A DNA stretch of 64,000 bases from Macrostomum lignano. Taxonomy: Eukaryota. The position numbers and the translations under genes were made by a program. This document shows, in pieces, positions 35,651 to 44,159 of the stretch. The stretch lies in assembly GCA_002269645.1 (NCBI GenBank), contig NIVC01001556.1:1-64000 (forward strand). The letters are read 5' to 3'. The notes beneath the pieces are model-generated. The model made no database searches, was not told the DNA's origin, and saw only the letters and a program-made list of their open reading frames with translations. How positions within the stretch are numbered: position 1 is the first letter of the stretch; every line of letters begins with the position of its first letter.

Positions 35651-37214
35651 CGTCGAGCTTCTGAAGTCGGAGAAGCAGCTCCGTCTGCTGAAGCTGCGCA
35701 AAGAAACTGCCCTGCTACAGGCGGAGGTCAGACAGCTTCAGCGGCTGCCCACAGCTTCATTTTTAACCCCGGTGAATTGCTCATTAACCTGTGGTCAGAT
35801 GATAAGGATGCTGCGCTGCAGGAGCCCGCTTTGGGGGCCAGCAAGGTGTTTCGAATCCCCGAATTCAGCAATAAGAGGAAGCAGCAAGACTCAGGCGTTA
35901 CCCATGCAGTCAGGCAGACTTGCATTTAAAGTGAAGAGGCTGTTGTTGACTCGCTTACGTTTGGAGACTGGATCTCTGCGAATGCCGGGATTATGCTGAG
36001 GTTGCTGGATGACGGCAGTCTGGTGAAGAGTGCACATTGGCGAGCTGTTTGAACTCGGGTTTGACAGGGCTCATGATATGAGCTTCGAGAATGAGTGCAG
36101 CTTGAGTCAGAGAGATCGGATCTGGGACGAGTTGCCTGATGGCATCGCAGAATGCCCCAGCGACTAGGTAAGAAAACCTTTTCTAAGTAATGCTTTTCGA
36201 GTTAAGTTAAGTTACTAAGTTATTAATAGATCTGCCTCCAACTTTTGTAGTTTCCCGTCCCTAGTTATTGAGTAGTACATCTTTCATCTCTAGCAAGGTA
36301 AGATTGCTCTGGTCTGCCTACTCAAATTGACTTTAAAGCCTTGCGGCGCGAAAATGCCCGCGTCGACTCGCAAAAATTGCGGAATAAAAACTATTTACAT
36401 GATAAATTATATCTGATAAGGTTGTAGATAAAAGTTAAATGGTCCTCTCTCTGGACAAATATCCAGACTGTATGTAGAGTATCATTCATTCATAAAATGC
36501 TACTGTAAGTAGAGTAACGCAAACACGCGCAGCAAAAGTAAAACAATGAATCACGACCCTGATAAGGTAAACGGTGTCCTCACACCTATCGTATTCGAGC
36601 AAATTCTATTTAACTGTCAAAGGGTTCCGTCAAGTTCCTAAGATTTGACCTTTTCACCCCATCAAATTAAACCGGAATAAACCGATTTTTGCAAAAATTG
36701 TGTATGAATACAAGCGGAGCCTGAAAAACCTCAAACTCGGAGCAGTCCCAAAGGAGTTGGAAATTTTCGAGAGGAGCGGGACGACATCTCTGAGATAAAT
36801 CCGTGCCGCCTTCTGAGCCGTCATTTTCTTTGATTTTTGACAGCTGAGTTGTTATCGGCGATTTTGTTTATTGATTTTTGTTGAACTTTGAATTGAAGGC
36901 CTCCCTATTCCTAAGGGATTGGATAGGATCCTTGGGACCGATTCCGATACTCTTAGACGTTCATTACTTTGTGGTACCCTAGAGTAGCAGATAGGGGCAC
37001 ACGACTCCGATTCTGATATTTCTAGAAGAAGACGCCCTTTCTGGAGGACCTCGTTGCTATAGATTTGATTGTATTATTAGGCCGCATCTTTGATATTGAT
37101 TCCGAACTTGAAGAGTATATTAACGCCGAAGAAAAGAATTGTTACATTCACTAAGATGGTCTCATACGCTCCCACGCGGCCGACTTCAGAATCGACGAAG
37201 GGAATCCCGAAAGA

Positions 37215-40200
37215 CTACTCGCTACTTAGTGAAGAATCTGCATGAAAAGAAGAGGAGACCGCCGCGATAATTGATTACTAAGTTTGCTCCCAGGCTGGCG
37301 GTCCGGAACTGGGAGTTCGTGCGCTTAGACACGTGATTCTCTCTCTCTCTCTCTCTCTCTCTCTCTCTCTCTCTCTCTCTCTCTCTCTCTCTCTCTCTCT
37401 CTCTCTCTCTCTCTCTCTCTCTTTCTCTTCCTCTCTCTCTCTCTCTCTCTCTCTCTCTCTCTCTCTCTCTCTCTCTCTCTCTCTTCTCTCTCTTTCTCTT
37501 CCTCTCTCTCTCCTTCCATCTGTTTCAGTTATTTAATTGAACAATCGTTTGTTATGCGGCATGTAAAGACCTTATGGAGCAGATTTACTGATGTTTATGC
37601 TCAACAATAATCTCATATGGCAGAGGCAGAGCAGCTCAGCGGTAGCGCACCCGACTCATCGCACCAAAGTGCCAGCTGGATTCGATTCCGTTTGCGGCTA
37701 TTTTGTTTGGGGCTTGTGCACTGGGCTTGTCATGCGACGGGCCAACTCCCCAAGGCACAGTTAGTGTGCATGCCGTTGTGGTCAGAGCGTCGGACTCATG
37801 ACTGAAAGGTCGGAGGTTCGATTCTCGACCCATTCAGAACAATCTGTGTCCTTGAGCAAGACACTTAACTCTGCATTGATTCAGTTCACCCAGCTGTAAA
37901 ATGGGCGCCAGCATTAGCTGGGGTAAGTGAGGCTGTGTGTGGCGCCCCCCAGTCTTTGGACTGAACAGCCGTACGCAGCCTTCAGATGCGCTGCGCAATA
38001 GCTGCGGCTGAGCTGTGGGTTGCACATCTGCCCAAGGACAGGTGTAATCAATTAATATTATGATTATGCCGTTGTACATCCTGTGTGATTGCGAGCCTGC
38101 TTGTACGTGTACGTGTGCGTGCTCAGAGGTCGGCGGAAAGGCTCTGACTGCCCTTGATCTGCTACAGCGCCCTCCAGAGCCCCCTGCAAGCTAACTGGCA
38201 CACTGACTAACCCTTTTATTGCAGGCTCCCAGAACGGTCGGCAAATCCAGCCTCCCCCAGACTGCGTAGGCGGAGCTCGCCCGCTCAGGCTAGCCTGAGT
38301 GCGGTGCGGAGCAGGGCAGCGGCATCAGCATGGCGGAGCTGGGCGTCCGGATCTCGAGGCGTCGTGGCCGGCGGCGGCTAACGCAGCTTCCAGCAAAACC
38401 GTTTCCATGACAACCGATTTCTGAGACGACTAAACCAGAAGGATCTGCTTTTGCTGAATATTGCAACTTCTGAATTATTAGATAATCAAGTATCTGCTTT
38501 GTTCCAAGTTTTGTTCCCAGTTTTCAAACAAAGGTTGTTACAATTCTACCTGAGCAAGCAGTAATAATAATAATAATAATAATAATACTAATGCCTCAAA
38601 GGCAGATGTGCAACCGACAGCTCAGCCGCAGCTATTGCGAGGCGCATCTGAAGGCTGCGTACGGCTGTTCAGTCCAAGGACTGGGGGGTCGCCGCACACA
38701 CCCTCAATCAGCTTAAGGGTTGTAGCCAAGTGGTTCGATTCTTGCCCTACCCGGACAATTTGTGTCCTTGAGCAAGACACTTAACTCTGCATGGCTTCAG
38801 TTCACCCGGCTGTAAAATGGGTGCCAGCATCAGGGCAAGCAAGCAAAGTATCCACAAAAAGCACAGTTGCTCTTGTCGACATGTACGGGGCAACCCCATC
38901 AATTGTTGAGCAAAACCGCTAACAGGTCCACCGCTTTTTAGAGAGGACCATGTTTGTAAATAAATATTATAATAAATTAATTTTTTGTTCATTTCTTGCA
39001 GCTTGCATAACCTTCTTTTGCTTTCGTCTATTCTAATTTGAAGTACATGCTTTAGAAAACTATGCATCCAATCATAGTACAGAAAAGTTTGCGGTTATTG
39101 ATTCAATCTTTTGTGTTTTAGACGATTTTCGAAGACTTCAAGAATACAAATAAAACTCTCAAATTTACAACGCAAAAATATATTGTGTAAACAAAGTAAA
39201 GTCACACCAAAATTCAATAGTGCAGTGCAGTGTAACAGCTTGCATGTCACACATGGCGCATATGGCGGAAGCAGTTCAGGGAGCGGTACTGTTATTTGGC
39301 CCGTAGTACAGAGTCTGCGGTGCTGCAATTGTGAATGCAAAACTGAGACAGATAAAGTTAGTGGCTACACCTGGCTAAGCTATCAGCTACACCTGGCTAA
39401 GCTATCAGCTACACCTGGCTAAGCTATCAGCTACACCTGGCTAAGCTATCAGCTACACCTGGCTAAGCTATCAGCTACACCTGGCTAAGCTTTCAGCTAC
39501 ACCTGGCTAAGCTATCAGCTACACCTGGCTAAGCTATCAGCTACACCTGGCTAAGCTATCAGCTACACCTGGCTAAGCTATCAGCTACACCTGGCTAAGC
39601 TATCAGCTACACCTAGGCTATCAGCTACATCTAGACTGTCAGATACACCTGGCTAGGCTATCAGCTACACCTGGCTAAGCTATCAGCTACATCTAGGCTG
39701 TCAGCTACACCTGGCTAAGCTATCAGCTACACCTGGATAGGCTATCAGCTACACCTGGCTAAGCTATCAGCTACACCTGGATAGGCTATCAGCTACACCT
39801 GGCTAAGCTATCAGCTACACCTGGATAGGCTATCAGCTACACCTGGATAATCTAACAGCTACATCTAGGCTATCAGCTACATCTAGGCTGTCAGCTACAC
39901 CTGGCTAGGCTATGGGCTACATCTACCTAACCGGCTGATATAGCAACTTCTCAAAGTGCAAATGCTCACCATAGCTGGCATAGATGATGCAGACGATGAC
40001 AACAATAAGAAAGAACACGCCCAGTATCAGGAACACAAGGTTCAACACTTTCCTTAGCAGCGGCATATTGTAGTCCTGCAACTCCTCCGCATTGTCGTCC
40101 TCGATTCTTCTGTCCTGAAATTTAAAGAAAAAACTACAAATTTTGGAAAAGTTTTCAAATCGCAAACTTCAACTCTAACTTCTAAAACTCTGGTTTAGTA

Positions 40201-43124: not shown

Positions 43125-44159
43125 CTAGAAATACGGGAAACACGGCTGTGTCAAGAAATGCTCACCGCTCACGCGCAGCAACCCCTCCGGGGTTGTGGGG
43201 GCGATAAAATCGATTTCTGCTTCTCTTGAACTGCCCAATAATTATTGATTCTCAGCGGGCGGGGTGGGGGCATAAAATTCCAACCCAACCCCCAGTTTTT
43301 GTTCTGTTCTTCTTCGTCTTTTCTTTCCCCGACATTTTCATTTCCGAGGAGAGGAAAGCAGTGCAGTGTGCATGTGGTGAACAATACGAATTCCCAAACC
43401 CAGTACAGCCTGTTCTGGATACATGATGCAGGCACTCGCCCCTCAGATGATCACTGTGCCCAGTAGGTCACCTTCATCAGTCTTTTGTTATCAATAATAG
43501 CACCTGTCAATCAAATTTACAGTGACAATGGTCAAAGAGTAGTGAGATTGCCTTACACAGAGTGATAATAAGCCGAAACTTGAAACCAATTTTCGAGCCA
43601 CCATCTATAGCTAACTGTGCCAGAGAAGCGATGTCCAGGTGGCCACACAAAATTCAACAGAATCTGCTGTCTTTATGCAGCAAAAGTCGCGGGCCTACGC
43701 AGAAATCTGTGCAGGAGCCGCTAGCTCCATGACAACTCGCTCGCTCTTCCGGCTCTGGTCGGTGATAGCTCGTACCTTCTGCACCAATGTCCGAGTTGGG
43801 CGCCTTAGCGCTCAACATCTCGAGCACGGTGCAACAGAAACCCGGTCCACATGTCGATTTTTGGCTTGAGCTCAACTTTGTCCTAAGTTAAGTTTATTTT
43901 AAATCGATAAGCTTGATTTTGCCTCGATGGGTGAGCATAACTGTTGAGAAGTTAATGTTCCTGTGCTAGATGGCCGGTCTGTGACTGTGTGGAAATTCAG
44001 GAGGCTGGCAAATCTGCAGGTTGTTTAACAACGAGGCTTTGCTTTAAAAACGTAGCTAATTAAAAATTAGCTGCACGACTCCCGCCCTCGTGAATAAAGT
44101 CCGAGGCGGAAAACCGAAGGTCAATAACTTTGCCACCATGCGGACAGGCAGCAGCGGGC

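Follow-up and report, generated by a model that had tools for sequence, protein, structure and literature searches.

A satellite-split gene of Macrostomum lignano predicted to encode a short tail-anchored member of a flatworm membrane protein family

A window of 64,000 nucleotides of the flatworm Macrostomum lignano (bases 1-64000 of contig NIVC01001556.1, assembly GCA_002269645.1; the term window refers to this whole stretch) was analysed here, with a focus on a minus-strand locus for which a first-pass annotation had proposed an unannotated gene encoding a membrane microprotein of about 84 amino acids (aa). We found that the locus is very probably the annotated M. lignano gene BOX15_Mlig008897, which encodes a 92-aa tail-anchored membrane protein. 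In the contig record, the gene range is 43054-39276 on the reverse strand, and by BLAST the retrieved contig stretch and the window agreed with 100% identity and matching coordinates. When the segments 43054-42968, 40114-39970 and 39322-39276 were joined, the product (P0002) agreed residue for residue with GenBank PAA66466.1 and PAA71445.1, which a cluster look-up assigned, as 'hypothetical protein', to BOX15_Mlig008897g1 and g3, together with a partial record, PAA89338.1, for g2. UniRef carries the same 92-aa product as A0A1I8FXR2, and two UniRef entries are automatically named 'Triple QxxK/R motif-containing protein'. The gene models that GenBank gives for this assembly derive from RNA-seq (StringTie, TACO and TBONE), with experimentally defined transcript ends (PMC5730564). 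When the 84-aa product was used as the query, one database protein was retrieved, the 92-aa M. lignano entry, with 100% identity over residues 1-77; an exact-protein look-up of P0001 gave no record. Thus, a spliced gene for a small membrane protein does lie on the minus strand, as proposed, but it had already been annotated, its product is 92 aa long and it uses another last exon. Since the gene and its product are present in GenBank and UniProt, nothing is added here as gene discovery: the locus is an ordinary gene that was catalogued before, and its orphan flatworm family is of modest interest. Literature and supplement searches found no mention of Mlig008897 or of its homologue Smp_171480, and no expression information there.

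The first two coding exons and their splice sites were read directly from the sequence (Table 1), and the coordinates proposed for both in the first-pass annotation are exact. Homologous proteins align without a break across the junction from 42968 to 40114 (E = 1e-13 to 1e-7), so the splice between exons 1 and 2, which had been offered as a point to check, is independently validated. Exon 1 is 100% identical across all three genomic copies of the gene and aligns to the polybasic segment and helix of the family (KKRRRFRRPRRNSKLDRLIRFLE), and exon 2 was matched exactly by tblastn with about 30 flatworm homologues. The position of intron 1 (after ...LQ and before D-K/R) is common to a long paralogue in the same species, Mlig000905g1. 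That a minisatellite fills much of this intron was correctly recognised; the 36-bp array and a degenerate 35-bp array together cover about 2.4 kb. The intron measures 2853 nt in the window and in the copy L001 and 903 nt in the copy L003 (L003 10121-11023), indicating that the copy number of the 36-bp minisatellite varies several-fold between gene copies. Intron 2 is longer by 132 nt (6 units) in L001. Within the probable 3′ untranslated region (UTR), a hexamer scan found no canonical AATAAA; AATATA is at 39184 and AATAAC at 39099.

The locus is a real coding gene. Between the window and the paralogous locus L003, there were 0 differences in the 232 nt of exons 1 and 2, whereas the unique non-coding DNA next to them differed by about 1.7%. 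Against the long paralogue, synonymous divergence was saturated (pS = 0.79) and pN was 0.35, over 59 codons; hence the short gene is old, and its evolution has been constrained.

The relatives of the protein were sought with phmmer, run exhaustively on 1.84 billion representative proteins, and with a profile search against 5.8 billion sequences. The phmmer search gave 22 matches, always to the C-terminal ~63 aa of the target, at 29-51% identity and with E values down to 1.6e-13. In the top 20 matches after the self-match, the alignments ran from query residues 14-22 through 76-85, in targets of 107-444 aa, at 33-51% identity (E = 1.6e-13 to 3.5e-6). The profile search gave 28 matches, and the family profile recovered the window protein at 5.8e-27. 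All matches that carried an organism name were from Platyhelminthes, namely Macrostomum, Schistosoma, Echinostoma, Paragonimus, Cichlidogyrus, Protopolystoma and Schistocephalus, as well as Spirometra, Hymenolepis, Echinococcus, Taenia and Mesocestoides, and the profile search returned no named match outside flatworms. No Pfam domain was identified in the 84-aa product, the 92-aa product or 19 relatives; the scans gave only sub-threshold and inconsistent matches driven by the transmembrane segment (TM), for example to Claudin_2, DUF3899 and Orf78. A profile search of the PDB sequences found nothing at E <= 1.

In the conserved core of the family, a polybasic stretch leads into a short amphipathic helix (..LDRLIRFLEDKR..); next come an acidic patch, whose last residues are (Q/K)(M/L)P, then a basic pair, a very hydrophobic 23-residue TM and, finally, a short tail. 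The consensus of this C-terminal module is KKKRRFRRPRRNSKLDRLIRFLEDKRVxDDxxxEELEDLQMPRLRKVLNIIFVTLGVCFLLAVIIVILYTTIA, and it usually ends within a few residues of the TM. In both alignments, the window protein keeps all the family-invariant residues (D30, D43, P47, L53, N54, F57, G61, V68 and I72 in its own numbering). The other members carry 60-190 extra N-terminal residues, whose consensus motifs are FFIPASYKG and, further on, P-G-LDLS-YNY-P (LDLSxYNYxP); both motifs are absent from the 92-aa product. Because the window gene starts at the polybasic stretch and is without both motifs, it is, as judged from these alignments, an old and short paralogue in which only the conserved juxtamembrane helix and the putative tail anchor remain. 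Its ~63-residue module has the same order as that of Mlig000905g1/Mlig000771 (206 aa), Smp_171480 of Schistosoma mansoni, ECG_06663 of Echinococcus and hypothetical proteins from Paragonimus, Schistocephalus and Hymenolepis. The likeness to the 206-aa paralogue Mlig000905g1 extends to the gene structure: a TM exon of the same length (145 nt) and phases (0 and 1) is followed by a tail mini-exon, and in both genes the phase-0 intron precedes D(K/R) and the phase-1 intron lies three residues past the TM. In contrast to its flatworm relatives, and apart from the missing N-terminal region, the window protein has a 4-residue insertion in the basic stretch, which does away with the RRNS site, and has a longer tail of 18 residues. 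Two short database proteins, P0017 (107 aa) and P0013 (135 aa), were not counted as short forms elsewhere: both were found on short Logan contigs and may be ORF calls in which upstream exons are missing. The 236-aa homologue of Schistosoma curassoni is encoded in one uninterrupted open reading frame (ORF; L005 2001-2711), and other schistosome models of 418-446 aa go on beyond the TM with a long additional region. Such models may reflect alternative C-terminal forms of the family, or they may be mis-joined.

The 92-aa product has a polar and basic N-terminus without a signal peptide. The net charge is +5 over residues 1-29 and -5 over residues 30-46, and the TM, which is the only hydrophobic segment, occupies residues 52-74 (23 aa, mean Kyte-Doolittle hydropathy 3.15), with LLRK directly before it and the 18-residue tail after it. 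These charge and hydropathy figures bear out the layout described in the first-pass annotation, with a basic N-terminus, an acidic patch and a TM preceded by RK. The term tail-anchored, suggested there, also fits since the TM sits near the C-terminus; the protein has one TM within about 30 residues of the C-terminus and no N-terminal signal sequence, as is usual for that class. The AlphaFold2 (AF2) model has a low-confidence helix at residues 19-33 and one long helix spanning residues 46-83, whose pLDDT exceeds 90 in the TM core. Three independent tails, those of P0002 (NNST, residues 86-89) and of P0008 and P0014 (NAT, NGT), contain an N-x-S/T sequon at a distance of 10-13 residues from the TM, which is a hint that the tail is lumenal and possibly glycosylated.

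Table 1. Features of the locus and of the surrounding repeats in the window (a slash marks the exon boundary).
Feature	Position	Strand	Evidence or remark
5′ UTR, short, approximate extent	43055..43087	-	paralogous model PAA89338.1 (P0003, flagged partial) starts 33 nt above the same ATG
Exon 1, coding part, 29 codons, ATG at 43054	42968..43054	-	donor CAG/gtaagc
Intron 1, 2853 nt, phase 0, mostly 36-bp minisatellite	40115..42967	-	
Exon 2, 145 nt, acidic patch, TM and ASY, ends in phase 1	39970..40114	-	acceptor tttcag/GAC, donor TATG/gtgagc
Intron 2, 647 nt, nearly all 22-bp satellite (39364-39921)	39323..39969	-	
Exon 3, coding part and TGA	39276..39322	-	per public gene model; acceptor cacaattgcag/CACC
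3′ UTR, probable, inferred extent	39088..39275	-	block duplicated along with exon 3, and hexamer scan
Third exon of the first-pass annotation (DSSLSSE and stop)	37214..37237	-	acceptor cctcttcttttcatgcag/ATT, strong-looking; absent from every public model
Inverted duplicate of the end of intron 2, exon 3 and 3′ UTR	35051..35373	+	90% identity to 39406-39088, ~320 bp
36-bp minisatellite, 63 copies	40447-42694		in intron 1
Degenerate 35-bp array	40303-40540		in intron 1
(GA)n run	37338-37512		
Short interspersed element (SINE)-like copies	31401-31562; 37767-37931; 38729-38833		common core with GAGTTAAGTGTCTTGCTCAAGGACACA

Several points weigh against this account of the gene and its product. For the exon-3 junction and the 3′ end, the support comes from public gene models and the paralogue comparison, and a canonical AATAAA follows the stop of the third exon chosen in the first-pass annotation but not the annotated stop. 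At the 5′ end, PAA89338.1 is flagged as 5′-partial and its frame is open above the ATG. AF2 confidence outside the TM is low, with a mean pLDDT of 66. A short-form orthologue was not found in another species, in searched databases that may lack other Macrostomum species. Finally, the family has no experimentally characterised member, and the localisation, insertion pathway and regulatory role considered below are inferred.

The choice of the terminal exon decides between the 92-aa product and an 84-aa isoform, in which exon 2 would be joined to the acceptor at 37237 and the transcript, main or alternative, would be polyadenylated after the AATAAA at 36872-36867, 342 nt past the stop. Both the acceptor and the hexamer are present in the sequence as the first-pass annotation described them, and the polypyrimidine tract at 37237 (13/15) is the best among the 195 YAG sites found in the 4 kb past the exon-2 donor. 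The AG, frame and stop of this exon are also retained in L003, and the canonical AATAAA already mentioned would speak for it. Nevertheless, we consider it unlikely that this isoform is real. Since 179 of the 195 YAG sites run into a stop within 49 codons (median tail, 8 aa), a short in-frame tail is what chance would give, and the phase compatibility of the exon carries no weight. All three genomic copies, through their RNA-seq-derived public models, and the UniRef entries end in the 39322 exon instead. In L003, the more diverged locus, the 39322-type exon has kept both its AG and its ORF, whereas the 37237 exon has 1 change in 24 nt, which is non-synonymous (E->A), and is no better conserved than the adjacent non-coding DNA. 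Moreover, the 145-nt exon of the long paralogue Mlig000905g1 is followed by a small terminal exon coding a 21-residue tail, as in the 39322 model, and an N-x-T sequon is found in 39322-39276 and in the tail exon of the long paralogue but not in the 37237 exon. The third exon and its poly(A) signal were thus mis-assigned, and 37237-37214 is at best a cryptic or alternative terminal exon; a minor alternative isoform from it is conceivable because of its polypyrimidine tract.

We also considered that the locus might be a transcribed but functionless remnant, that is, a truncated duplicate decaying in a repeat-rich region. Both N-terminal family motifs are gone, the gene is set among satellites and its last exon belongs to an inverted duplication, an orthologue outside M. 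lignano was not found, and exon 3 and the 3′ UTR are the parts that diverge most between the paralogous loci. However, the ORF and the splice sites are intact in all three copies, every family-invariant residue has been kept in spite of the saturated synonymous divergence from the long paralogue, and exons 1 and 2 are free of differences between loci that are about 1.7% apart in their flanking DNA. Decay of this kind is therefore quite improbable, and a constrained short gene is preferred.

The three exons might instead be only the 3′ part of a longer gene, with upstream exons that carry the N-terminal motifs of the family. Most relatives are 135-444 aa long and are matched at their C-terminus, and the 5′-partial flag of PAA89338.1 and its open frame above the ATG would agree with such a gene. 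Nothing was found upstream on the minus strand of the window by tblastn with about 30 long homologues, and the weak upstream matches (58.6 kb, E = 0.2-0.7) were translations of a 35-bp satellite. Upstream of the ATG at 43054 in the genomic sequence of the window, the first in-frame stop is 33 codons away, and no other in-frame ATG lies between the two; two of the loci are annotated as complete coding sequences from this same ATG, and the strand is taken up by a trypsin-like gene 3 kb upstream. These results make an undetected 5′ part very unlikely, and the short form starting at 43054 is retained. The upstream neighbour is a trypsin-like serine protease gene (46122-48881, minus strand, 267 aa, Pfam Trypsin), found at 3 kb in all three paralogous loci. 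Since polycistronic, trans-spliced units occur in M. lignano, the microprotein gene could conceivably be co-transcribed with the trypsin-like gene.

The UniRef name would make the locus a flatworm orthologue of vertebrate TRIQK, which is a small endoplasmic reticulum (ER)-membrane protein of similar size and layout: about 90 aa, a basic N-terminal half and one hydrophobic segment near the C-terminus. This is refuted at the sequence level, and we hold it to be almost certainly wrong. The window protein had no match to the TRIQK family (PF15168, gathering score 27 bits) at E <= 10, while a human TRIQK control, validated by its own match, scored 143.4 bits. Alignment of the flatworm family profile to TRIQK by hhalign gave a probability of 0.6%, and BLASTP gave no alignment. 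The three QxxK/R motifs of human TRIQK stand in tandem; the window protein has only two dispersed QxxR motifs, QNPR (17-20) and QDRR (29-32), 12 residues apart, and it also differs from TRIQK in having no acidic C-terminal tail. Other family members bear unrelated automatic names: besides TRIQK, UniRef uses 'Conserved plasma membrane protein', 'Membrane protein ORF8', 'ZP domain-containing protein', 'Serine/threonine-protein kinase DDB_G0282963' and 'Syntenin-1' (probably a fused model). Being mutually inconsistent, these labels are noise and are not to be used.

The long family members resemble MFF, a metazoan tail-anchored adaptor, in layout: linear motifs that are short and N-terminal, then a helix just ahead of the C-terminal anchor, and hardly any tail. 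MFF was nevertheless rejected: for the corresponding Pfam family (PF05644, Miff), hhalign gave a probability of 0.12% with an 11-residue helix match only, and none of 19 members had a Miff match; the human control scored 447 bits. The first-pass annotation had further suggested a regulin-like micropeptide, which would tune a SERCA-type pump through its TM helix, and this is hardly credible: the regulins (phospholamban, sarcolipin, myoregulin, DWORF and sarcolamban) are likewise small membrane peptides with one TM near the C-terminus, but no regulin family was among the Pfam matches at E <= 10 for the window protein and 19 family members, the cytosolic helix and acidic patch are conserved as much as the TM, relatives reach 444 aa and nothing links the flatworm family to SERCA.

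As to mechanism, we propose tentatively, and with low confidence, that the family may be a flatworm-specific tail-anchored adaptor and that Mlig008897 could be an 'anchor-only' microProtein that modulates the long paralogues through a shared membrane partner or as a hetero-oligomer, with a lumenal tail that is maybe N-glycosylated. The insertion route and the topology are argued from the behaviour of tail-anchored proteins, whose insertion depends on GET/TRC40 or EMC and leaves the N-terminus in the cytosol, and from the positive-inside rule and the hydrophobicity of the TM. With no signal peptide, and with its sole hydrophobic segment 18 residues short of the C-terminus, the protein would most likely enter the ER membrane after translation, by a GET/TRC40-type route. 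The LLRK before the TM and the uncharged tail after it suggest, by the positive-inside rule, that the N-terminal ~50 residues would be cytosolic and the 18-residue tail lumenal or extracellular. The long and very hydrophobic TM would favour the secretory pathway or the plasma membrane over mitochondria, and the cytosolic helix with the acidic patch may form an interaction surface. Given that the short form is without the N-terminal motifs yet keeps the shared module, we speculate that it might pair or compete with Mlig000905/000771 through the juxtamembrane and TM module in a microProtein-like manner. MicroProteins are short paralogues that titrate their multi-domain relatives, such as Id against bHLH and LITTLE ZIPPER against HD-ZIPIII, and the window protein resembles them as a short paralogue that keeps only the putative interaction and anchoring module of a longer protein in the same genome. 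The known examples are soluble regulators of transcription factors, unlike the membrane-anchored window protein, and the comparison is a pure analogy.

The surroundings of the gene are rich in repeats and had been read in the first-pass annotation as a 3′ duplication of a G-protein-coupled receptor (GPCR) gene, antisense to and interleaved with the microprotein gene. We found that the two genes are convergent and not interleaved. The last exon of the receptor (30382-30651, plus strand) matches positions 200-260 of the 260 positions of 7tm_1 and has its stop at 30651, about 8.4 kb from the 3′ end of the microprotein gene. No other copy of this exon was found anywhere in the window, and tblastn with the 7tm_1 last exon and tblastx of 18.0-32.6 kb found no receptor-coding similarity in 35.1-43.3 kb, so the supposed intron holds no duplicated GPCR exon. 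What is duplicated is the gene's own exon 3 with its 3′ UTR and the 22-bp satellite, in inverted orientation, plus dispersed repeats. The exon at 39322-39276, which lies inside intron 2 as first drawn, may be what was taken for the duplicated GPCR exon.

The inverted duplicate holds an orphan pseudo-exon (35135-35181, plus strand) with an intact acceptor and one synonymous base changed relative to exon 3; in its L003 counterpart, the AG is lost and there is a 2-bp deletion. Exons 1 and 2 have no copy on the plus strand of the window. The 22-bp satellite is present on both sides, with 110 copies at 32664-35093 (plus strand) and about 24 copies at 39921-39364 (minus strand). The other similarities between this locus and the DNA downstream of the receptor are also repeats: the SINE-like segment 31401-31553 pairs with 37931-37778 and 38833-38729, and a ~400-bp repeat pairs 31575-31971 with 38198-38532 at 71% identity. 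ARAGORN found no tRNA gene in 36-44 kb, and Rfam found no family in 30-44 kb. The distal part of the window, 54669-64000, consists almost wholly of tandem arrays with periods of 21, 16, 35, 20, 21, 34 and 49 bp and a strong GC skew; one of these arrays gave spurious tblastn matches to the family N-terminus.

Overall, this locus illustrates that a real gene with micro-exons, kilobases of satellite apart, can be recovered from the sequence alone, and that the terminal exon can be mis-picked in doing so. The UniProt name TRIQK is wrong for the window protein, and the automatic names are inconsistent across its family. The family itself is conserved across Platyhelminthes, from the free-living Macrostomum to the schistosomes and tapeworms that parasitise humans and livestock, with no relatives detected elsewhere. 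Transgenesis and RNA interference are available in M. lignano, and this conserved, lineage-restricted membrane protein is a reasonable candidate for functional study in that species.

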